From Takakia lepidozioides (taxonomy: Eukaryota > Plantae > Bryophyta): DNA of 64,000 bases. A program made the position numbers and the translations under genes. Under the pieces are notes generated by a model. It was not told the DNA's origin. It was given only the letters and a program-made list of their open reading frames with translations, and searched no databases. This document shows positions 12,130-62,339 of this stretch, one piece after another (position 1 is the first letter of the stretch; each line of letters starts with the position of its first letter). Location: the NCBI GenBank assembly GCA_030704615.1, contig CM060731.1, forward strand, positions 18,848,001 through 18,912,000, read 5' to 3'.

Positions 12130-14294
12130 TCACAAGTAATGGAACCTTGTGTTGCGCACGGTCTCTCTTGTTCCAGTGATGGTGTTCTTAGCAGCCTGAG
12201 ATAGCAATCTGGGGCGGACATTTGCATATGAGGTTAGAGGCCGCTGATCCGGGGGGTAGTACATGGACTTTGGTCGTCTCCGATAGTCTTGGTTGTCACC
12301 TGTGGGCTCTACAGTGTTGGGAGTAAACCGCACCTTCTTTTTATGTTGAGCTTGCTGCAAACAATAGACTCCGGGTCTGCATTGTCCAGTTACTTGATTA
12401 CCATCCCCGTCATTCTGTTCCTCAAGATGGGCACCTGGTAAACCTGCTTGAACCAAAACCAGTACTCAAAAGAATTGTTGGGGAAGAGGAAGAGGATGAA
12501 GAACAGGAGGAAGAAAAGTGATTCGGGGATGCTTGTTTTTCACATTGCCAATAGCAATTCTGGGGCCCCAGACAACAAGATCCGATTGCAGAGAATCTGG
12601 GGACGGTTTACAATCATATCTCAGACCTTTTGTAATCATGTGAAAGCTGCCGTGGCAAATACAACTAGAGATACTGGCACTAGTTGAACCTTTTGTTTTC
12701 TAAATGCGATAACACAATTCCGAAACAAGCATGCAACATATCTTGTGAGTTCTGCGACTTTTAAGGAAACAACACAACACTGGAATCCACAATCTCGAAC
12801 CTCTGATTGAAAAGTGGTCTAGACGATAGCCTGACACATAAAGTTTTCCGTCAACAAGTGCACAAGCCTACCTCCACTTTCATGAAAACAATGGGATGAA
12901 ATGAAGTCATGGAGTTCAATAGTTGAAACAAGTAAACCTACTTGTATCTGGCAAGCATTCTTCGCATTGCCCCCCAATACATATCTCACAGCATTCATCC
13001 ATGCATGTTTCGCAGACCCCTTTTTCTTTCGCTTCTTCGGAAAATTTTGGCCAGCAGGTGATAGTTGCTCCAGAATCTGGAGTGGCTGCATGTTTATAGA
13101 AAATATGAGTCATTTGAATATAACTCTCGAGGGCACCTGTACCACTATCTTCCGGAGCCCTTCAAGAGGATGGCTCTCTTCCCTTCTTTTTCTCTCTCTG
13201 CCCACAAGACGGCAAGAAAGTGTATTGAGTGTTTCTCTAAGTGTGTTTCTGTCTCTAGTCTGTTTCTATAATAACTCCAGTATTAGAATCTAGGGGTCTA
13301 CAGTCTAAGTCTCGTTTAATCTGCAAGTGAGAGATGTAGTTGGCTGTATGGATACTATAACAGGTAAAATTGTCACCCAGCCAAGAAACTACATTGGTTC
13401 CATTTTGTCGAACTTTCTGACCTCCCACCAGGCTACGAAATATACATTACAATTCCTCTTCTCCTCCTGCTATCCCACACACCTTGATCTGGATTAAGGA
13501 TGCAGATCCTAATATAATTAAGTACCTGACGTGCTGGGCCTCCAGGATCCAAACACAGCAAAGCTGGGTTGAAATCTTGAGGTCCGCGTACCAGACGGGG
13601 TGGCCCTTGAAATCGGTGCTGTTGACAGCATCTCCAAATAATCGCACGCAGGAGGTGGAATGTTTTCCCAACTCACCCTTGATTCCTCACTCTTGTCCAA
13701 ATTGTGGGGCCTTACTACGTCCCCATGAATACTGTCTCTAATAAACCCAATGGATTTGGGAGAGCTTTCGTTGCTGGAGCAGAGGCTAAGACTCTTTGTG
13801 AACCAAGGGCTGCTTGAGCAACAGGGGTCCGTAGAAACACCTACAGATCTACAGGAGCGACTAGCAACACAACCGCGAGGACCACATGATGTAGCATTCT
13901 CCGCAGAAGCCCGTGATGAAGATGATGGGTCGTTTGGGTGGCTTGCAAAAGTACCTCTACTCCTGTCTTCAGGAACTTGCTCCTCCTCGATGTAGAGGTT
14001 GAGACGTCGCCCTTCGAAGTGATCATTCGCATGGTCACACTCAAAGATGTTGCCCAATTTCTCTGTGGTCATAGCGATGTTATCCCTAAACTGGTCACTC
14101 GTAAATCCCTGCGGATTTTCTTCAAGGATGTCCTTGTCCTCCTTTATCCGCCGCTTTTTAGCGGCACCAAGGATGAGACAGAGCGCTGTGGCTGAGACCG
14201 CCAGCGCCGCCACAATTGTGAGCCCCTTAGTGAAAGCTGCTGGGTTGAACTGACCGGTGCCAAGCCCGACGCTCACCATCGTCTTCTCCAACAT
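12130..14294 (-). CDS. Predicted 408-aa N-terminally membrane-anchored protein with Cys-rich exon and C-terminal KKVRF..VEP..YRRR motif (exons 14294-13526, 13085-12942, 12443-12130)
   Basis: Hydrophobic segment LTIVAALAVSATALCLILG followed by AKKRR. Canonical GT-AG phase-1 junctions join three ORF pieces in frame (769+144+314 = 1227 nt). KKKVRFTPNTVEPTGDNQDYRRR resembles a motif of a plant family of uncharacterised TM proteins. Confidence 0.65.
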
Positions 14295-15734
14295 GTCTCT
14301 GCCACAGCTGATTCAAAGTAATACCAAAACCATTGACGAGGAAGTTTGGAATCAGTCACCCAATTCCCCGTACGTTAACTGGGCATCTAATAACCTGGCA
14401 TTTTCATGAAGAACAGGGAAGACAGCATTTCCAAATCATTTCTATGGAAGACCCAAGATTCATACAGAAACCGGCGTGTCTCCACCCAACACTACTAAGA
14501 CATCTGACAGTTTGAAATGCAAACTACTCATAATCGGCTCTCAATCCACACAAAACTGACTCTTTGCTTACTCACTGCTGAATGCTGCCACAATCTCTTA
14601 ACAGATTGCATTCGCCTCTCTGAATCTCGCCATACTTGCCTCACGGGTGTTTCTGCCATCATCAAACTGAGCTCAATCCCCTTCTCCCAATACTCATCAC
14701 ATCTGCTGCCATTGCTCCACCTCCACCTCAACACGATCCTCCTCCTCCTCCTCCTCCTCTCTCCCCACAATCATCCCTCCACCATAACCACAAACCGATC
14801 TCTGAGATGCATACGAGATGCTTCGTCTTCATCTCTCTCATTTCTCTAATGCAATTCTCGCACGCACAAGAGCATAGAGAAGAGACCAAAGGGCATGCCT
14901 TTGCCAGGCCCCCCTTGGCGGCACGTGGCGCCCATCCAGGTCGTCGCCTTTGGGAACTCTGTGCCCTGTGCCTCGGGAACGCTCAGAGCGCAACATCAAA
15001 TGCGATCCGAACATTCATCCACATGTATTAACGTCCCTGCGAACTTCATCCTACGATGAAGCACAACATCCATATCTCATCCACCTCCGACAATCCATTT
15101 GATATTTAGGTGGCCTGGACGAATGAAAGAGAATTTGGATGCCGTGCATCCGCGGCACCAAGGGTCACTACACCACCAAAAGGCTTTGCTAACAGGTTCG
15201 GTATGCTGGCCCGGGCTATCCAGACCTGCTGAGATCTCTCTACATCCTGCTTCGGCACCAGCCCCGGTAGAACCCCTTGAACATACGATGATTGTATTTA
15301 TAGACAAATTTGAGAAAACATGCTTTTTTTTGGCACAATGATTCAACGACCAATTATGAAAATAAATAAATAAACATGAAAATATATCACATAAGTTGGA
15401 TTCATGAATGCATAATATTCTCATCCATATATGATATATCAACAAAGTCTTTGGATGAGAATCTCGTTGGAAAGAATTAAATTAATGATTTTTCGACAAT
15501 TGATGTTTGAATATCTCAAGATCTACCAGAGCTCATCTAAGTAGGGTGGGTATAAGTAACGCCTGCCCGAGCCTGAGGTGAAGGTTTGGAAGGGAGCAAT
15601 GGAGGAGTGCGAAAGGACTCAAGCGAGAGACAAAGTGTCGTGTCTGTCCATTTGGGGGCTGCCAATTGGTGGAGTTGGATCGATCCGTGTGAAGATATAT
15701 GGAGCAATGGGAATGGAGGCGCTCCTTTATCAAC

Positions 15735-16058
15735 AATTTCGAAGTGGAAAAAGAACTTGTTCTAGAAAGCTTGAGTAGATTGCTACTTTCTCGATGTTGC
15801 CCAAACTTTGTCCACGGTAGATTACGTTTTCTCTAGACAATTCCTACGTACTGAATCTCTTTGTTGGCGCGATTTTATTGTTTTTCTTCTTTCTCCAAGA
15901 ATTTCAAAAGTGGAAGAGAACTAGTTCTTAGCACGCTTGAGTAGATTGCTAGTTTCTCCATGTTGCCCAGACTTTCTCTAGGGTAGATTACACTTTCTCT
16001 CGACAATCCATAACACTAAACTTCTTCGCTGGCGCGATTATATTGCTTTTTTTCTTTG
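15735..16058 (+). repeat. Diverged ~165-bp tandem duplication directly upstream of the H1-like gene
   Basis: gcttgagtagattgcta...gttgccca...ggtagattac...tggcgcgatt.tattg occurs at ~15769 and ~15935. Confidence 0.85.
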
Positions 16059-16069
16059 TCCGTTGGCTT

Positions 16070-16618
16070 ATGACAAAGATGTCGGAGAGGTCGCAATCAA
16101 CTCGCTCGTCGACGACCTCCAAAGTTTCACGAGGCTGCACTAGTGCCTCGCAATCTAACACACGTAGCTCTGCACGTTCGTCGTTGGGTGGTAGCTCAGC
16201 ACGTTCATCAAGGGGTGGGTCAAAGGCTACCTCACGGGCTACCTCCGCGCATTCATCGCGTCGTAGCTCAGTGCAACCATCTAGTACGTACGATCCTTGT
16301 CCCGGAGCAAAAGCACATCCGAAATGGACAAAGAGAGTACAAGTAGCACTCGTGAACCTTCGACATCCCAAGGGATCACATATCGGAATGATACGTAGAC
16401 ACATTGTCAGCAAGTACGAGGGGAAGCTCCCGGAAGATTACGATGGCTTGATTAACAAGTCCATTTACTCTCTCATCAAACAAGGTAAAATTCTAAAGAT
16501 CGGCACTCGCTACAAACTCACCAAGAAGGGTGAGGACGCTCTTAGCTCCTCCGTGTCAAAGTCTGCTATAAGATCTCACTGTGGCAAACCAAAAGGCCAC
16601 AGACATCGCTACAAGTAA
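16070..16618 (+). CDS. Intronless linker histone H1-derived basic protein (GH1 winged helix with Ser/Arg-rich N-tail), protamine-like candidate
   Basis: HPKWTKRVQVALVNLRHPKGSHIGMIRRHIVSKYEGKLPEDYDGLINKSIYSLIKQGKILKIGTRYKL aligns by eye to the plant GH1 consensus (HP-Y..I..A...L....GSS..AI..YI...Y...LP.....L...L..L...GKL.K....YKL). N-tail consists of RSS/SRxxS repeats. No K/A/P-rich C-terminal tail. Open 182-codon frame from ATG 16070. Confidence 0.8.
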   Translation: MTKMSERSQSTRSSTTSKVSRGCTSASQSNTRSSARSSLGGSSARSSRGGSKATSRATSAHSSRRSSVQPSSTYDPCPGAKAHPKWTKRVQVALVNLRHPKGSHIGMIRRHIVSKYEGKLPEDYDGLINKSIYSLIKQGKILKIGTRYKLTKKGEDALSSSVSKSAIRSHCGKPKGHRHRYK

Positions 16619-17669
16619 GACTCCACGCACTCTCATTTCATATGTGTCAAGTTTAGATAACGAGTTCGTTTATTTTATACTGTTGTACAAAAATCTTAAT
16701 CTCAGAGTACAATTGATTCAAATACAATCTCTTCATAATCATCACAAATTTATATTTCTGTTTTGAATTTGATTTACTAGTTCAGTTTTATATCAAACCA
16801 TGATGATAGATCAAGTTACAGTCTCTAGTGGTATAAATCCTCATGAGGACATCCTTTCTTCAAAGGGAAAAAAAAAAATGAGAAATGAAAAAAAATGTAC
16901 TTGATAGTATGGACACTAAAAATGATACTATAAAATCTAACATTAATAATAAACTATATTTTTAAATATAAGTAACATATTTAAATTGTCTCCATGTAAG
17001 ATCAACAGTAATGTGCAATTTGTTTTAAATATTTTAAGTGATTCGTGATCAATCATTGTCACAGGAAATCAATTGGGGTTGGTACTATTTTTTGTTTACA
17101 TGAAAAGTGGACAATGTTTATATTTATTGGATTTATTGGTTAAAAAGTAATTAAAATATTTATATGCTCTTGTGGATTTAGGAGGAGGAGGAGGAGAATT
17201 GGACGACGGAGGAGGAGGAGGAGGAGGAGTCGAAGACGGAGACGGAGTAGAAAAGGTAAGAAAAGGAGGAGGAGAAGGCGTCGGCGAAGTAAGCATAGAC
17301 GGCATAGACAGCGCCGAAGGTGACAAAAAATAAATATGTCATCGCTGAAAGAGATCAAATATACATCGGAGGTGGAGATGTGATGTAGATTTTCATTGAA
17401 CGGTTTTTAAGGGTCTTAAATTAAAGAGTAGTAGCATTGGAAGTATTCCCAAAAAAAACATAATCTAACTCGGATGTCATAGACATTAATATGAATCAAC
17501 AATTATAGCTAATTCATAATTTAATATAAAGAGGATATTTTAATAAAGTGTATATAACATGAGGGCCGCGCCATGGTATTTATGTAAAACTACTCTAACG
17601 ACATGTGCAGAATAAATCACATAATAGAAGCATTGGTATTGCGTGAGTAAAATGGAAAAAATGAAGATG

Positions 17670-18850: not shown

Positions 18851-19965
18851 GCTTCCATCTTTCTACACTTTGCATATTCGAACCAGCTAGGAACAACCGC
18901 TACTAGCATAAGATGGCAACTAAAAAAGTTTAAAGTGACGTGATCATAACTTCTGAAAAGACAAAGCAAACTTTGAGATAATACAGACAAACTACGCATA
19001 GACAAGGTACCAAGGAATGATTTTTTTTGGAAATTTTGAAAACCACGTGTGTAAGGCACCTAAGTTTTTCAAGTTTTCCAAATTATGCTATTGTTGCCAA
19101 CCGAGGGGCCCGTCACGTTAGTAAATGCCGGAACCTGATCCATGTTCCAAATTCGTCAAGGCACCCCGTGAAGTTGCAATGCATGCCCATCGCCCTGAGC
19201 CACGTGTGCAAGTCAATTGCTTGTGACTAGAACCTGTTTCACAAATTGGCCGTGTATGCCATAGTGATGGCTTGAATCCCTATGCCCTTCTAGGTTCAGA
19301 TGCTGCTTACCAATGCAGGCCATGGATGTTTGCTCCATTTATTGGAAGCAAAGATGGATTTACTGGGGAGCAGACAAATTGGAATTTTTGGGTATACCTA
19401 GGGCTTTAGAAAATCATAGTTGACTAGGTTTTTATTGTTTTGGGGCGCAATAAATTTGTCTCAATTCCATGCTCACTTTTCATTTATGAAATGTTTCCAT
19501 CTATGTATAATATCGGGAGAGCTCCGCGGGGTCTGCGAAGTGGCCTGCTTCTAGTCCATGGCGACCTCGTTGATGTTGCTTCCCCGTCTGGCCCAGCTTT
19601 TCCTTTCCCCCCATCAGAGTGTTTCTCCCTCTCTCGTTTGATTCCTTTCAAGCGCGTTCTTTTAAGCGCATTGGTGCCTTTTCGTGTGCCCCCTTCTTTT
19701 TCAGATTTTAAGCTTCTACGGCTCCTTCGGCAACGTTCCCCAGGCGGAGCCTTCACGTCTCTTTCATGTCTCCAGTCCCTGTCAGCACTTTGCTATCCTC
19801 TCCACCCCCCCCCCCCCCCCCCCCCCCCCCCTCTGCTCTTCATTACCTGCTTGTTTAATCTTTTGTTTCTGACTGCCTCTGGCTTGTCCCCCCCCCCACG
19901 TCTTTCGGAGTATTGATGGCCTCCTTGTCGCCAAGGCTTTCTCCCCCGCATTCTCCTTCCCTTGC

Positions 19966-21171
19966 TTGCCAAGATTTTCGTGTCTCTCACAGCTCCCCGA
20001 CTTCACTTTCCCGGTGCCACCAGAGTTAGACATGGCCTCCTTCATCTCTGTTGCGAACCATCAAAGGCGGGACAATAGAAGAGATGATAGACACGGAGCA
20101 GCAGGACCTTTGAGGCGCAACCCCCATCACCATGGCAATCGAATCGCACATAATGGCCCGGGGGTTTTGGGCAATGGCCCTTCCGCCTCATTCGACCCTT
20201 CGGCAGATTCTTTTCAGCTGTGGAGTGAGAATGCAGGTGTGGTTGATGAGAATCAGCCTATTTTCAACATTGATATGGATCTGGTAAATGAGCATTCCTT
20301 GTTGCTCAAAGAAACGGGAATTCTTGTCCATTTCCCAGGTCGTGCGAGAAACAGGCATTGGGCTAGGAGTTGGACCTTAGAACACTTTGCCCCAGGAGGG
20401 GGACTCACACACCATTTCTGCATTCCTCTTGGTCGGGGATTCTACTCCATTGTGTTTGTTTCAGCGGACCATGCTGAGAAGGCCCTCAACTTCAATACCC
20501 TGAAATCCAGGTATAGGGTGAATATATTTCCCTGGTCTTCGGAATGGGGACACAAAGGAGGTGTGACTTGTAAGCCGAGAATAATCGCGCTCCCTTTTCT
20601 CCCTGGCAACTACCTCCGGTCTTTGCCAGAGATTGGGGCGCATTTTGGCGCCTTCATCGGGTCGATTCTCCCGAACGATCACTTTATCTCTGACCCCCAT
20701 TCTGTCGACAACGAAGGTGGTCCGTTTGAAGGGCATACAGATAATGGAATCCCAAGGTTAGTGGTTTTAATGCCTGAATCTGATCGTATTCCGCACACCA
20801 TCAAGCTCCCCTCTCTTGACGGGTCTTTCATTTCAGTGGTTGCACAAGAGGAGATCCTTGCAATTAATTGCCACCACTACCATCGAGACGGACATGTGAA
20901 GGCAGACTGCCCCGATTTGCCTGGTAAAGTGCAGGATGTTTTCCCCCCATTCGTTTTTCCAACTGTGAGTGGACCCTCACGAAATAGGGGGATCGTGGCT
21001 TCTTCTCCCTTGGTAAGAATGGACTCCACCCCCGTGGCTCAACCCCAAGCGAAGCGTTTTAGGGATACCATCACTGGATCCCAGTCGGTAAGTCCAAAAA
21101 TCTATCTCCTGCCGGTTAAATCGCCAGTTGACGAGCCCTGGTCGCGCGCGGCCAGGGTGACGGCATACTAG
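19966..21171 (+). mobile_element. L1-type LINE ORF1 (DUF4283-like region plus degenerate CCHC knuckle); no adjoining ORF2
   Basis: IPLGRGFYSIVF..AEKAL, IFPWS, LPFLP..LPEIGAHFG.FI and CHHYHRDGHVKADCP. Preceded by a C-rich 5' region with poly-C runs. Confidence 0.75.
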
Positions 21172-22929: not shown

Positions 22930-24812
22930 GATGCTCTGCTGTTTGGATTATGGCTGACGTCTATCTTGAATGTCCCTCAATGGAGCTGGGACGGCTGCTA
23001 GGGCGGGTGTAGGAATGTGGAGGAGATGGTGGTTATGTTGTGCATTGATCTGCAGTCTTGAGTTGATGGGGCGCCGTCTGTGTTGATGGTGTTCTAATTT
23101 CCTACTTGTTTGGGCGGCAAGGGCGAGCGTAGGGCTGCTCATGGCACCTAAGCAGAAGGCTCCAGAGATATTAGAGCCCCCACCACCTCTTGCATATCTC
23201 ACAAGTGAGGTGCAAATCATTAGTCGATGGGCAAGTGTCGAGCAACACGTACTGTGCAGCAAGTGAGAGAATCACTTGGTTGTTTGTCTGAATCTGACTT
23301 GTTTGATTTGCCGCCTCCACCTAGTGCCTCACGGTGGCCCAAACACCCCAAGCCATACAATTGTCGTTTTCTTCTTAGAAGGCAAGTAGGCTTGATTTTG
23401 GGTTGCAACTGCTCGGTCTCCGAGTCCGATGGCCTTGCTGCGGAGAAAATTTGATGTGGGTGTTGGTTTGGGGTTGGAGACTGACGACAGTTGATGAGGT
23501 TATGATACGGTACAAGGGCAAATATTGTGCCATCCGACAGTACATGCCTAAGAAACCGATTAAGTGGGGCATAAAGTGTGGGCCCTAGTGGATAGTGTCA
23601 CTAGTTATATTTATGACTTTGATCTTTACTACGGCAAGAATGGAGGGCCAGAGGGGATGAGAGAAAAGAGTGGAAAGGGTGAGGGATATGATGTGGTGAG
23701 CAGGTTGGTATCACCACTGCATCGCCGTGGTCATGTCGTGGTGACCGACAATTTTTTTCACCTCTCCTCATTGTTGTATGACATGGCCCTTCTTGGCACT
23801 TGGGCCACTTGTACAATGAGGCTGAACCGCAAGGGGTTGCCCCCTTCTTTGATTGCCATGATGAAATCCAAAACTGCCCGACAGAGGGATTCGTGGTACA
23901 AAATGCATGTCACGCGGCAAATTGCTATCGTTCTATGGTGGGATAAGAAAGGTGTTTTCCTTGTGTCTTCTGCAGCTCGGCCAGCCAATGGGCCCAATTC
24001 ACCTGTGAGCGTCCGTCGATTTGTGGGGAATCAGCAAGTGCAGGTTCCGTCTGTGCCCATACATGTCCAATACCAGACATACATGCGGGGTGTAGACGTT
24101 CAAGATCAATTGAGGGGTGCATATAGTATGCAATTCAAGACCCACAAGTGGTGGCACCGTGTCTTCTTTTTCATTTTGGACACCATCATGGTGAATGCAT
24201 ACTTGCTCCACAGAGAGCATTTGAGAGGCAAAGGCCTACCTGCAATTAGTCATCTTGAGTTCACTATGCGGATGGCTCAGTGCTTGATTGCTGGTGTTCA
24301 TGGCTTTGAACCAGCGGCTTATGTGTATGGAGAAGGACGGGCCCATATGCATAAGTGTCTACATTCCAGCCTTCGGCGTCAGTGTGCAAGGTGCCGCTAG
24401 AAGACTCACTTCTACTGTCCCCAGTGCAATGGGACATACATGTGTCTCGGCCAATGTTGGCGTGATACCCACAGGATACAGGCAATGTGATGGCTTTGAC
24501 TATGTTCAATGCCTTGTGTATGTTATTGTGATGGGAGGAGTGAAATCGGGATTTGTCTGCACCTGCTGTTGATTTGGTTTGTGTGGTCTGTACTGTCTGG
24601 CAGGGAGGTGACAGGGGGCTCATGGTGTTGTATGGCTATAGGGGGTGTGTGTCATGGCAGCGGCGGGGTCCTCGTCTTTTTTTTTTGACCTGTTATGTTG
24701 CTGATGTTTGTTCTTTGGTTCGTGAGTGAGCACTGGCAGAGAGGGGGCAGGTAAGATGGTGGGTTTTGTTGTTTTTTTGGGTGCTGGTGTATTTTGGGGA
24801 AGGGGGGGGGAG
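22930..24812 (+). mobile_element. piggyBac-like transposase pseudogene segment, copy 1 (DDE_Tnp_1_7-type core plus C-terminal cysteine-rich domain)
   Basis: TVDEVMIRYKGK..RQYMPKKPIKWGIK/VWALVDS..YIYDFDLY, HVVVTDNFF, TMRLNRKGLP, WWDKKGVFLVSS, YQTYMRGVDVQDQLR, KWWHRVFFFILD..VNAY, CARCR*KTHFYCPQC..CLGQCW..H. Frameshifts present; no TTAA/TIR ends found. Confidence 0.92.
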
Positions 24813-37504: not shown

Positions 37505-40500
37505 TATTGAGTATTGGGAACATCGAACTAGTTCTTGGGAACAGTGAGATTTGAACTATACAATTGCCCGCCAAAAGTACTCTGATATACAGTGTGTGAT
37601 AGTTCTCTTCGCGTGTATCGATTTACTACCAGAGCAGGAACACGTTGTATGACACTGTATGCAGAAATGAGATGAGTGTGGAATCTAAGAGCGTTGAATG
37701 GTGATTGCATGTCTGATCAGATATGAATGTGTAGTGTGACAACGTTGATTGAATAGTGAAATTCACTAGGTTATGGGCCTTATCTTCATGCTGGTCGTCC
37801 GCTACGAACAAAGAGTCTGTTGAGAGTTTGTTTGTTGCTTGTAGTTAGTTTAGTCAAAGAATCATATGTTTTTCTTTGTTTTTGTTTTGCAGTACCAGAC
37901 ATGGATAGCAAAGATTTTTGTAATGTCAAAAAGTTCAATGGTCACAACTTTCAGATATGGAAGTATAAAAATGGAATCAGTCTTGTCCGGTCGAGACTTC
38001 ATGGATATTGTCACAGGTCGTTAGCAGAAGCAGCCGACGCAGTTGCTCGGCACCGCAAAGATATGCAAGCCAAAAGTGTTTTGACGCAAACGATTGATGA
38101 TAAGCTTCTCGTCCAATTGTTAAATTGCAGAACCTCAGCTCAAATTTGGTCACGCTTGATTCTTATCCATGAGCAGAAGCCCACTGAGGACATTTATCAT
38201 TTACAACACCAATTTTATGAGTGCAAGATGTCTCCAGGACAAGATATGGCTTCTTTCCTTGGTGAAGTAGACATCATAGTGTCAACTTAAAGATCTAGAT
38301 ACTGCTTTTGATGACAGCGCGGTCATGACCAAACTTATCTGCAATCTACCACCAGAATATGACAATCTCATCACAGCTTGGGATAACGTTACCAGGGAGC
38401 AACGCATTGAGGTTGCTAAAAGAAGAAACCAAGTTAAAGAGATGAAGGGAGCAGCAAACTTCTACGGACACCCGAGCATTCTATACCAAGCCAACTGTGA
38501 CCACAACTGTCAAGTCACAAACGCAACAACAATCGCATCAACAACCTGTTGGAAGCCGTGGGAGTTTTATACTCAATGGCAACGACAACCGTCTGGATCT
38601 TATTCAAATCAGTGGAAACCTGCAACTGTTTCAAATAGTGGGAGTAATTGGCAACCGAACGTTGCATGGAGAGGGCCACCTCCAACCCATATTGCTTGGC
38701 GGCCACCGCTCACCAACGAGCAATGTCAAGAAAGATCTATTATGATTGCAGAGCTCAAGAAGACTACCTGTTGCAACAATTGCGATAAGGAAGGTCATTG
38801 GGCTAGAGAATGCCCTGACCCGCCCAAACAATTTCAGTACATTGGTCAGTCTTCACAGAGTACTACCAGTCCAAGAGCATGGACCATAACTAGTTCTGTT
38901 GAGAGTCATCTCACCAACTGGTTTACAGACAGCGGTGCAACTCATCACATGACCTGCCGTCGAGAGTGGTTTACCAAGTTTACTCCTATAGCCGAAGGAC
39001 AATGGCCCGTTAAGGCTGCTTTTGCAGATGGCGGACGCAGTGATATTGATATGATAGTCAACAACAATGGCACAGAAGAACGAGCTGTGTTAGTGGATGT
39101 TCTTTATTGTTCGGGTCTCAAGAGAAATCTCTTTTCTATACTCCGAGCTGTCTCTAAACCAGGTATTTCAGTTACCTATACAAGCACAAATGTCTATTTT
39201 CTTCAGCACAATCATATCGCTCTTAGTGGTCATTTACATGGAGGTCTATGGAAACTCAACTTTGTTACCATTACTGCAACGATGAGTCATCTTGTTACAG
39301 AAGTAGCAGTCCTTCCCAATTGACACTGTACAGAGTCTAAAACTTTGGCATCATCGCCTTGGGTCATCTTAGTCATGGCATGATAAAACAGATGGTCAAT
39401 GAGCACATAGTAGAAGGGATTAAGTTTACAAATCCAAGTTCCACCATAGAGGTTTGTCATGGTTGTGGCTACGGCAAGCAGCATAGGACGTCGTTTCCTT
39501 TCAACATTTCTCGTACTAGAGTAGCCAAGCCTGGCATGCTTTTTCATAGTGATATTTGTGGACCGATGCCAGTTCCTTCTCTTGGCAAATCCCAATACTA
39601 TATCCTTTTCAAGGATGATCACTCCGGGTACCGCTTCATCTTCTTTGCTCAACACAAATCATAGGCTCTTTCTTGTTTTAAGCGAGTAGTACGCCACACC
39701 TTCAGAGATACAGGAAACAAAGTCCTTACCATACGGACTGACCAAGGAGGTGAATATATGAGTCATGATTTTGCACGCTTTTGTGAACAAGAAGACATCA
39801 TCTACGAATACACTGCAGCGTACAGCCCAGAGCAAAATGCTGTCTCTGAAAGGGATAATTGAACAATTGTTGAAGCCGCTCGGAGTATACTTCACTCAGC
39901 CTCACTTCCAATTCGTTTTTGGGCCGAAGCAATCGCTTTTGCAGTGCATGTACTCAACAGAACAGGCACTAGAACGCTCCCAGGAAAAACGCCTTATGAG
40001 GCTTGGTTTGGCATCAAAGCATCAGTGGCTCATATTCGAGTGTTTGGCTGTATAGCATTTGCACATATCCCTAAAGAACGAAGACACAAGTTGGATACTA
40101 AGAGCAAGAAATGTTTGCTGGTTGGATACAGTGATCACTGCAAAACCTACCGTCTTTGGGATATCATAGACAACAAAGTCATAGAGAGCCGCGATGTTCT
40201 ATTTTGATGAACATACTTACGGTGATGACGCTGAGGACGCAGATCATGATGAGGCTACATATGCTCGTTTGTTTTAGGATTTTCCTCCTACCCATGTACA
40301 ACAAGAATCCGTCCAAGTGACAGTACATACTCCTCCAGTAAGTCCTACGCATACTGCTCTTGCCCATATATTGCAGGTGCTAGAATCCGTCGAGGTGGTA
40401 GTACATACTCCTCCAACAAGTCCTGCTCATATATTGGAAGTTCCTGCAATACTAATTGTGACATCTGATGATGTTGACACATTTTGATGATCACATAGCA

Positions 40501-42141
40501 TCACCAACGGCGATTCCTCCTCGTTCCAGATTGCCCCCCACTAGATTCGGCGACTGGATATACCCAACTAATCAGAGTACCTATGCTTGCACATCAACTG
40601 TCGCTTCACTCCCATTACCACCAGAGCCTGCTGATTACTGGACAGCCATCAATTCCCCTCATCATGCTGAATGGATCAAAGCTATGGAGGAAGAATTTCA
40701 GTCTCTAATCCAAAATCACACTTGGGAGCTTTATGATCTTCCTACAGATCGGAACACAGTCAAGTGCAAATGGGTTTTCAAGCTTAAATTAGCCGTTGAT
40801 GGATCCATCTCACGATACAAAGCAAGACTTGTTGCTAAGGGATTTACGGAGAGGGCTGGTATCGATTTCTTAGAGACTTTCTCACCTGTAGTGAGATATG
40901 ATTCCATACGGACTATTTTGTCAATCGCAGCAGTACACGACATGGACATCACCCAATTTGATGTTAAAACTACTTTTCTCCATGGAGATTTAGCAGAGGA
41001 AATCTTCGTGGATCAGCCTTTAGTGTTCATAGATCCGACAACCCCTAAGCAAGTGTGTTGACTCAAAAGTCTATCTACAGCCTTCGACAGGCTTCTCGAG
41101 CATGGAACAAGAAGTTCGACTCTTTCTTGACTAAATATGATCTCACAGCAAGTGATGTCGATCCTTGTGTTTATTTTAGCAGCAAAGGCACAAATCTGAT
41201 CCTCACTATCTTTGTTGATGATGGTCTAGCCTGCAGTGTCAAAACAGAGAAGGTGACAGATGTTCTTAATTTCATGGGTGAAGCTTTCACTATCACCAAG
41301 AATGCGGCAAGAATGATCCTGAAGTCTATGTAGGGCTTCACTTGGTTAGTAATCGAATTCATTGCCAGATTTCTATTGACCAAGACAGATACGTCCAAAA
41401 GATCATTTTAGACTTCAGACTTGTCGATGCAATCCAGTCTCCGTGCCAGCTGATCCGGCGAGCCATCTGGTATCTTTTTCCACTGCTGATGATGAACCTG
41501 CAACTTCGTTTCCCTACAAAGAGTTGGTGGGCAGTTTAGTATCTTGCTATGTGCACGAGACCGGACATTTCATATGTTGTCAATAATGCAGCCAAATTCT
41601 CTGCCAATCCGACACAGATACACTGCATGGCTCTGAAGAGAATCTTGAAGTACTTGATTGGCACACCACACATGGCGATATGCTATGGTCCAACACCACA
41701 GATCAACACTTTGGTAGCCTTTTGTGATGCAGATTATGCTATGATCTTGATGATCGCAAATCCAGATCTGGCTACGTGCTATTACTTAATGGGGGCCCTG
41801 TTGTGTGGGGAAGCAGAAAACAAGTCTGCACAACAAGTAGCACCACAGAGTCAGAGTATATTGCTGCATTTGTAGCGGCAAAAGAGATTCTCTGGACTCA
41901 TAGGCTGCTTCACAGTCTTGGAGTTTCGCAGAAGGAACCTACTCTATTGTTCTCTGACAACCAGAGTGCTATACGTCTAGCATACAATCCTGAATATCCC
42001 AAGAGGACAAAACATTTGGACGTTGCATATCATGTCATCAGAGAAAATCAAGAGAAAGGGGAGCTCAAAGTTCTATATGTCCCTACCAATTCACAAATCG
42101 CTGATTTATTCACGAAGGCACTTCCAGTACACACCTTCTAA
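37505..42141 (+). mobile_element. Ty1/copia retrotransposon, degraded; putative 5' LTR ~37505-37768; 3' LTR missing
   Basis: PBS GGTTATGGGCC at 37769. gag KFNGHNFQIWK and CNNCDKEGHWARECP; protease WFTDSGATHHM; integrase HSDICGP, FKDD, RTDQGGEY; RT KARLVAKGF, QFDVKTTFLHG, IFVDD; RNase H SSTTESEY, DNQSAI, KHLDV, ADLFTKAL. Confidence 0.93.
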
Positions 42142-60520: not shown

Positions 60521-62339
60521 ATGGCAGAATGCTTTGAGACCAAATTATCGACAAAGAATGCAACAATTTTGAGTTGTGAAAGTGCAACCACTTCTATTGT
60601 GCATTTGGCATTGGATGAGACTTTGTGGACTAACCTGCCTCAACATCTTATTGAAAAAGTATTAAGCATATCCTCCATATGTCATCTTTAAGAATTCATA
60701 GATAGAATAACTCGTTTTGTTCATCTAGCTGGCCTGAATCCATTTGTGAACTAGTTCATGTTTTTTCAATGTTATTGTGAGTATAATATATGAAATAATT
60801 GAGTGGGGATGTTTAGGGTTATGTAATTATATTGCTCAGTTTTCAGTTTCAATATATTATTTTATTGGTGCTTTAAATAATTTATTTTATTGACCTATTA
60901 TAAGAATTTTATCTAATATCTTTTGTAGAGCATCCAAACTCGAATCTAACAAAAAATGTAAAATTCTAGGTAAGATAAGTGATGAGAATTCATGGCTAAC
61001 ACATGTTTGTATTAAGGGGGTTTAAACGGACTTGCTTTGCTTTCTATGAGAATATAACTTAATCAACGAGATATAGAGGTCATCTTGATATCCTGTTAAT
61101 ATCGAAGATGCCATAATAAAATAAATCAGATGTTGTAAACATGTAATTCTAGGCTTCTCTGAACGTTGACATCATGTCAATTCATATTCCTTTGTAAACC
61201 TTGTGGTAGTGAAAATAAAATAAGCATGCTTATTTCTGCATCAATGGAGGACTTTGTAAACATGTTAATTTGTTGTTTGGACCACAATTGACAAGTTGTT
61301 TAGACTGGGTTGTTTTTGTTGTTAGGTATTAGTATGGTTGCCTATCCCAACATTTTTACGATTCCGATCTGTATGCAAGACTTGGAACATGCTCTTGACT
61401 TCTTCAGTTTTTTTGAAAGAGTGTGGCGACATACCCTCTCAAGGGCCATGGTTCTTGATGTTCAAAAATGACCACTACAGGGAGGCGACTACTTATAACC
61501 CATCTCTTAATAGCTGGCACCATATTCCCCTTCTTGTTGCAGCTGCCCCTGGCCAAATTAGTTTTCATGTTGCTGCAGCTGGGGGCCTTCTATGTTATTA
61601 TGCAGCCGAATGTGATAGTGTTGTGGTTTGTAATCCACTTACAAGATCTTGGCGCAAATTACCCCTCACTCTACGAATTCAGTTCTTCCAACCTGTGGGT
61701 ATGGTAGTAGATAGACCAACAAGATCTTACAAAGTTGTCGTTGCAGGAATTTGGGCCACGTATGGGGCTTGCTATCCTACAGCTGAGGTCTTTGACTCAG
61801 CCACTAATACTTGGAAGATTACTAAGAACACGCCTCCAAATTTTCCATTGCATCCACCAGGAATTTTATGTAATGGGGTTTTGTATTGGCGGTGTCATGA
61901 ACCTCACGGATTAACCACTTACGACATGCATGAAGAGGTTTGGAATCAGATACATGCACCTTTACCATATTCATTTGAGAGTTATGGACTGGTAGAATGT
62001 CAAGGAAAATTATACATGGTTGGCAGACTGGATGAAGACAATACAACCAAAAGCATTTGCATCTTGGAGCTTCAAATGATACAATTGTGTTGGAGGGAAG
62101 TGGATCGAATGTCTGACACATTGTTAGAAGAGTTTCTACGGGACGCAACCAATGATGCTTACTTTCGATGCATTGGACATAGTGATTTGGTGTTACTTAG
62201 CATGTGCGGCCGAGACATGCCTCAGTTACTATATGATGTGTCCAAAATGTCATGGCGACGTTTGCCTAGGTGCTCCATGCTTGAGCACCGGATGGTTGAT
62301 GGGTTCTCTTTTGAACCACGATTGGATGCTCTAGTCTAG
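60521..62339 (+). CDS. F-box protein with beta-propeller (kelch/FBA-like, At5g15710-like) substrate domain; exons 60521-60658 and 61326-62339
   Basis: LWTNLPQHLIEK|VLVWLPIPTFLRFRSVCKTW F-box, then AAAGGLLC, VVCNPLTRSWRKLP, AEVFDSATNTW, LVECQGKLYMVG and C-terminal FEPRLDA. Confidence 0.92.

Follow-up and report, generated by a model that had tools for sequence, protein, structure and literature searches.

A probable moss gene of the bryophyte PRM type: two predicted exons for a protamine-like sperm nuclear basic protein

The descent of protamines from linker histone H1 is a textbook case of the repeated evolution of sperm DNA packaging, and to our knowledge the plant H1-derived protamines have been characterised in Marchantia only. 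What, then, should be made of a moss open reading frame (ORF) whose product carries a diverged H1-type globular domain (GH1) behind an arm rich in serine and arginine? The locus lies in a stretch of 64,000 nucleotides, referred to below as the window. A first, sequence-only reading had described it as an intronless and possibly retroposed H1 derivative with a short basic C-tail, and had proposed for it either a role in sperm chromatin or the status of an evolutionary intermediate. The analysis presented here leads to a different gene structure, and the window gene most likely serves to package sperm DNA, as do genes of a kind already described from liverworts.

The 182-codon ORF is present and intact on the forward strand at 16070-16618, as first described, with its ATG at 16070 and its TAA at 16616-16618. 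Its product consists of an 82-residue N-terminal arm, a central block made of residues 83-150, and 32 further residues ending in a His/Arg/Cys peptide. The ORF is single-copy, with neither a second copy nor any other GH1-coding stretch in the 64-kb window. By exact look-up its product is not on record in public assemblies, and word-index protein searches run with the whole ORF, with residues 70-182 or with a three-sequence profile returned nothing outside the query's own set. No orthologue above about 30% identity was found among 15 billion proteins, a metagenome scan with the profile produced 276 pattern matches of which 0 were confirmed, and for the window gene no similarity to any database entry outside GH1 was detectable. 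The exons discussed below were searched, translated and folded separately, and all these results refer to single exons. The features of the locus are collected in Table 1.

Table 1. Features of the locus and its upstream region, in window coordinates; a slash within a splice site marks the exon boundary.
Feature	Position	Strand	Basis or remark
Tandem duplication, promoter / 5' leader unit	15722..16061	+	copies 15722-15896 and 15886-16061, ~80% identical
Distal 15-nt motif TGGCGCGATTTTATT	15865..15879	+	identical to L001 7898-7912
Proximal motif copy TGGCGCGATTATATT, ending 25 nt before the ATG	16030..16044	+	one change relative to TGGCGCGATTTTATT
Upstream motif, form for sequence searching: TGGCGCGATTWTATT			
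Exon 1 coding part, start codon to AA of the junction codon	16070..16614	+	50% GC
Ser/Arg-rich N-terminal arm, residues 1-82	16070..16315	+	composition count
GH1 (linker histone) winged-helix domain, residues 83-150	16316..16519	+	Pfam, phmmer, model
Basic linker ending in the His/Arg/Cys peptide	16520..16614	+	
Predicted phase-2 intron, 567 nt, 26% GC, donor CAA/GTAAGA, acceptor ggatttAG/G	16615..17181	+	sequence and L001 parallel
Predicted exon 2 coding part: one base completing AAG, then 46 codons, then TGA (17321-17323)	17182..17323	+	
AATAAA, possible polyadenylation signal, 6 nt past the exon 2 stop	17329..17334	+	

The central block is a true but diverged GH1 domain, which bears out the winged helix first proposed. 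The linker-histone HMM search suggested in the sequence-only reading matched the Pfam family Linker_histone (PF00538) to residues 83-144 (E 7.2e-5) just above the cut-off, the margin between the score of 23.4 bits and the gathering score of 22.4 bits being small. An exhaustive phmmer search of residues 70-182 against 1.84e9 cluster representatives retrieved 10 proteins at E<=1e-3, the best at E 4.2e-6. Nine of the ten carry GH1 domains and are mostly plant H1s, such as a Psilotum H1; the best sequence hits are plant H1s with 29-34% identity, and the tenth and weakest, P0010, is an unrelated repeat protein. Two of the ten, P0005 and P0008, are short singleton GH1 proteins from Logan contigs of public assemblies, and their loci (L001 for P0005, in run SRR22405887, and L002 for P0008, in run SRR31511108) serve below for comparison. 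In the alignment, the window protein retains the hallmarks of plant H1s: helix 1 opens with the "AHPK-aromatic" pattern, and the columns of conserved Ala, Leu, Gly, Ile, Leu-Pro and Lys are kept. Helix 1 starts with Lys-Trp in both the window gene and L001, whereas Tyr or Phe replaces this Trp in plant H1s.

Structural comparison leads to the same assignment. When the PDB was searched with a profile made of the three short GH1 proteins (the window protein, P0005 and P0008), human H1.0 was matched with E 1.5e-5; a direct phmmer search of the ORF against PDB sequences gave chance-level hits only. The single-sequence AlphaFold model was poor (pLDDT 56), with only generic winged-helix hits in Foldseek, and was replaced by an alignment-based model of residues 75-166, whose 12-row input alignment itself contained H1s. 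This second model (pLDDT 76) has a helix-helix-helix-hairpin topology, and Foldseek superposes it on the globular domains of H1.0 and H5 with target TM values of 0.73-0.80 and an rmsd of 2.1-2.8 A.

Several known classes of plant GH1 protein were considered and set aside. HMGA proteins combine GH1 with AT-hooks, and exon 1 contains no RGRP or GRP and no Pfam AT_hook match. In TRB/SMH proteins the GH1 domain is accompanied by a Myb domain and a coiled coil; in the window protein Pfam finds Linker_histone only, and the N-arm is low-complexity Ser/Arg sequence. Neither is it a canonical somatic plant H1, as the long C-terminal tail rich in Lys, Ala and Pro is missing: the domain is followed by only 32 residues and then by the Arg-rich exon described below, so that the absence of a somatic-type tail had been correctly noted. 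No SPKK motif was found in the window gene, and searches for AT-hook and Myb motifs were likewise negative. The GH1 phylogeny that had also been proposed bears on this in part. The window protein, P0005 and P0008 do group together, apart from nine somatic-type GH1 domains, but on long branches and with weak support (73/72); the likeness of the window gene to MpPRM, the Marchantia protein, is described below in terms of build.

On either side of the domain lie two segments of distinct composition. The Ser/Arg-rich N-tail of the earlier description is real and was measured as 82 residues, with 27 Ser, 10 Arg, six RS and four SR dipeptides and a net charge of +12. Part of this arm exists because of an in-frame tandem duplication of 27 bp (x2) at 16164-16218. 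On the other side, the 32 residues of exon 1 that follow the domain contain 6 Lys and 3 Arg.

Where does the protein end? The His/Arg/Cys peptide had been taken for a short basic C-tail and the gene for an intronless one, and neither description survives a closer look at the apparent stop. The TAA at 16616-16618 occupies positions +2 to +4 of a splice donor, and an in-phase Arg-rich exon lies downstream at 17182-17323. With splicing as predicted from the sequence, the peptide becomes an internal linker, and the gene has an intron. The acceptor is the first in-phase AG acceptor, placed after a T-rich tract, and the junction codon would be AAG (Lys). The predicted intron is poorer in GC than both exons, exon 2 having 56% (Table 1). 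A second plausible donor, G/GTGAGG between 16530 and 16531 in phase 1, counts against this structure; it would join the Gly/Asp frame of the tract, and was set aside since it leads only there.

The predicted second exon has a striking composition, with 33 Arg (72%, written with six Arg codons), 4 Lys, 3 Ser and 2 His among its 46 codons. The 64-kb window has no other Arg-rich ORF, whichever strand is read, and this one lies just downstream of the sole GH1 ORF, on the same strand. Its frame holds no ATG, GTG, TTG or CTG between the preceding stop and the frame end, and it could therefore be expressed only by splicing onto an upstream exon. Purine-rich tracts are by nature open in several frames, and the Gly-rich frame of this one is open too, which counts against the exon; openness alone therefore proves nothing about coding. 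The codons themselves are more telling. In the Arg frame, 14 of the 15 C's stand at codon position 1 (p 2e-6), and among the 31 codons other than AGG, Arg is still specified by 18, where single changes would lead one to expect a fraction of 2/9 (p 1.7e-5). These patterns argue for a tract that is coding in its Arg frame, and a genuine protamine-type exon with 33 Arg in 46 codons very probably forms the end of the gene. When exon 2 was searched by itself, neither Pfam nor Atlas gave a hit, which is usual for sequence of low complexity.

The locus of P0005 offers a parallel. There too the apparent stop lies in a phase-2 donor (CAA/GTAAGT), which opens a predicted intron of 717 nt; the first in-phase acceptor is gtgtgtAG/G, and the junction codon is AAG again. 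The exon 2 that follows has 148 codons, of which 55 encode Arg and 27 His. The Arg codons are mostly CGT, and the Arg richness is therefore kept at the protein level and not as a common DNA repeat. The window gene and L001 thus have in common an SR-type N-end and an exon 1 that ends in R-(Y/C)-K (R-C-K in L001). In both, a donor overlies the apparent stop and is followed by a predicted intron of 0.6-0.7 kb and then by an Arg-rich exon 2, and both carry an identical 15-nt motif upstream. They differ in the length of the N-arm, 25 residues in L001 against 82 in the window gene, and in the tail, which in L001 is His-rich, CGT-encoded and 148 codons long, against 46 codons in the window gene. Their GH1 domains are only about 30% identical, and the remaining nucleotide sequence of the two loci is without similarity. 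A common motif in otherwise dissimilar DNA, together with so low a GH1 identity, marks the two as old homologues that have retained a small cis-element.

The same observations bear on a simpler explanation, in which the product is the 182-residue exon-1 protein only, made from an unspliced transcript or one that retains the intron, and the Arg tract is a non-coding simple repeat of the (AGG)n type. Such a view draws on the fact that the ORF is complete with its own stop, on the openness of purine-rich tracts in several frames, the Gly frame included, and on the public-assembly ORF callers, which ended P0005 and P0008 at the same type of stop. Against it, in both the window and L001 the stop sits in a near-consensus donor with an in-phase acceptor and an Arg-rich exon downstream; the codon-position pattern and the Arg-preserving codon diversity of the tract indicate coding; the CGT codons of the L001 tail do not fit a microsatellite common to both loci; and the only Arg-rich ORF in 64 kb stands 567 nt downstream, on the same strand. 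We consider an exon-1-only product unlikely, and retain the two-exon structure.

The intron also bears on the idea that the gene was retroposed. A processed retrocopy was rejected in view of the predicted intron and of L001, with which the window gene shares its promoter motif, its intron position and its tail exon; the retroposed origin suggested at first is thereby contradicted. As for traces of retroposition, the only A-rich candidate is a run of 11 A at 16868, about 250 nt into the predicted intron, and the only flanking direct repeats are those of the upstream tandem duplication. Rfam found no histone 3' stem-loop at the window locus, L001 or L002, and no stable or shared hairpin was found in the 3' regions.

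The locus of P0008 is less regular. Its GH1 ORF is followed by units rich in Arg, His, Tyr and Cys in other frames, and its called stop lies within GTAAGA. Like the window gene, L002 thus has a GH1 domain and then Arg-type units; its intron, however, seems to begin directly after the winged helix. Between 800 and 1100 of this locus, units of the pattern HGRCK-HRR-aromatic-HK occur in two frames about 30 nt apart, too close for an intron, which points either to a duplicate that has decayed within the intron or to a gene with a frameshift.

Upstream of the ATG, the local duplication first described as that of a promoter is indeed there, as a tandem unit of about 165-175 bp (Table 1). Each copy contains a short ATG ORF of eight codons (15795-15821 and 15960-15986), and these would be upstream ORFs within the leader if transcription starts at the distal motif. 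The 15-nt motif is matched twice in the window, once in each copy of the unit and nowhere else, where 0.01 matches would be expected. No longer word is common to the upstream regions of the window gene and L001, a length of 15 nt being reached in 0 of 1000 shuffles. In L001 it stands 88 nt before the P0005 ATG; it is absent from L002. The DUO1-type MYB site is AACCGY, and none was found in the 670 bp upstream of the window gene or upstream of L001 or L002.

Such a duplication might also belong to a gene that has lost its use. The locus could be a silent or recently disabled protamine-like duplicate, its sequence intact but no longer expressed or needed, under relaxed selection on sperm functions. 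The window is rich in transposons, as its piggyBac and copia-type pol ORFs show, the gene has no known close orthologue, and the duplicated unit places one more copy of the motif, together with a short upstream ORF, within or ahead of the leader, all of which would suit a gene of this sort. The state of the gene itself speaks otherwise: reading frames are open in the two exons, donor and acceptor are canonical, the motif is kept in both copies of the unit, and the codon pattern of exon 2 still shows selection for Arg. A disabled duplicate is accordingly given little credence, and the reading preferred here is that of a gene still in use for sperm chromatin.

What kind of gene would this be? 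In Marchantia, MpPRM is an Arg-rich, DUO1-dependent sperm gene (PMC6290024), and the protamines of liverworts arise when male germ-specific H1s are cleaved (D'Ippolito et al. 2019, as cited in PMC13251019); for MpPRM and the liverwort germ H1s, Higo et al. 2016 is the further source cited in PMC6290024 and PMC13251019. According to these papers a GH1 domain with an Arg-rich tail is the defining build of H1-derived sperm proteins, and the animal H1-derived PL proteins (PL-I type, in molluscs and others) are traced to Eirin-Lopez et al. 2006, as cited in PMC13251019. The window gene would combine both parts of the PRM-type build, GH1 and Arg-rich tail in one gene, through canonical in-phase GT-AG sites predicted from the DNA, and L001 has the same layout. 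The two exons of the window gene thus probably encode a sperm nuclear basic protein that is protamine-like and belongs to the bryophyte PRM type. The protamine-like role put forward in the sequence-only reading is kept, but on other grounds than those it gave, namely a GH1 domain and a predicted exon with 33 Arg in 46 codons, paralleled in L001. Calling the gene an evolutionary intermediate, on the other hand, is unnecessary because the full build of GH1 and Arg tail is present.

The likeness to the known systems has clear bounds. With MpPRM and the liverwort germ H1s the window gene shares an H1-type globular domain, an Arg-rich C-terminal part and a presumed role in the condensation of sperm chromatin; unlike in MpPRM, its N-arm is long and rich in Ser and Arg, and a phase-2 intron separates linker from tail. 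The animal PL-I proteins likewise have an H1-type winged helix flanked by basic arms rich in Arg and Ser, and the same route from linker histone to protamine is proposed for them, but the origin in the plant lineage would be independent, and beyond GH1 the sequences are unrelated. Somatic plant H1s share the GH1 domain, to the extent of the identity of the best hits given above, and the window gene departs from them by its Arg-rich tail, its Ser/Arg N-arm and its long GH1 branch.

The way in which the protein may act can be modelled, by analogy, on Marchantia MpPRM and the animal H1-derived PL proteins. It would be made in spermatids, where the winged helix would dock it on nucleosomal or linker DNA, and the Arg tail would neutralise DNA phosphates and condense the chromatin, possibly once released by proteolysis, as happens in Marchantia. 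In animal protamines, RS motifs are phosphorylated under the control of kinases, and the Ser/Arg arm recalls these motifs. The arm would likely be controlled by phosphorylation, and might hold the protein soluble or inactive until deposition, or else aid its removal after fertilisation.

Could such a protein serve chromatin outside sperm instead? It might be a stress-, spore- or stage-specific linker-histone variant, for example, with its Arg tail and SR arm at work in somatic chromatin or in RNA binding. Plant GH1 proteins with non-sperm roles do exist (H1 variants, HMGA, TRB), SR-rich arms occur in RNA-processing proteins, and the 670 bp upstream are free of the DUO1-type site. But AT-hook, Myb and SPKK motifs are all absent from the window gene, and a tail of 72% Arg on a GH1 domain is the very build by which H1-derived sperm proteins are defined (PMC6290024, PMC13251019). 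A role outside sperm is therefore held to be very improbable, and a sperm protein of the PRM type remains the preferred reading.

Beyond this identification, a more specific proposal can be put forward tentatively, as a conjecture that may well prove wrong. The window gene and L001 could represent a distinct and very fast-evolving moss subfamily of H1-protamines, with an expandable, phospho-regulated Ser/Arg arm, a winged helix and an Arg tail placed behind a phase-2 intron, the donor of which also serves as a stop. If this were true, the choice between splicing and intron retention would act as a switch between a full protamine precursor and a tail-less GH1 protein, and TGGCGCGATTTTATT would be a spermatid-specific promoter element of these genes.

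The points of interest of the locus are its distinctive Ser/Arg arm, its donor doubling as a stop codon and its conserved promoter word. A moss gene with the full build of GH1 and Arg tail would add a second bryophyte lineage to the plant H1-derived protamines, and the short conserved upstream motif is a candidate male-germline promoter element. ORF-based gene calls, those of public assemblies included, end such genes at the TAA of the donor, and the protamine exon is therefore missed.

Some minor observations concern repeats and short matches. A (CCT)n tract in the window at 14715-14755 is 76% complementary to the Arg-tail exon at 17180-17220. It was considered as a possible second gene and rejected, the minus strand having only seven Arg in a row (ORF 14528-14770) and no GH1 nearby; it is probably a simple repeat. 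An Rfam match to mir-598 at 9157-9255 of L001, within the Arg/His-rich exon, scored 42.9 bits against a gathering score of 69 and was discarded as a low-complexity artefact. P0004, a protein of 143 aa from Logan contigs, is made of two tandem GH1 domains and nothing else.

As for the surroundings, two consecutive long ORFs of 158 and 401 codons lie on the forward strand at 19440-19916 and 19966-21171, neither of them matched by Pfam. On the minus strand at 13518-14294, an ORF of 258 codons that opens with ATG encodes, close to its N-end, a hydrophobic stretch resembling a membrane anchor; it belongs to no Pfam family and may be an exon of the neighbouring gene. The transposon-derived sequences of the window include a piggyBac-type transposase ORF at 23564-24400 and copia-type gag/pol pieces (zf-CCHC, Pol_BBD, RVT_2) at 38325-41061, and an ORF for a Kelch/KIB1-4 beta-propeller is found at 61338-62339.
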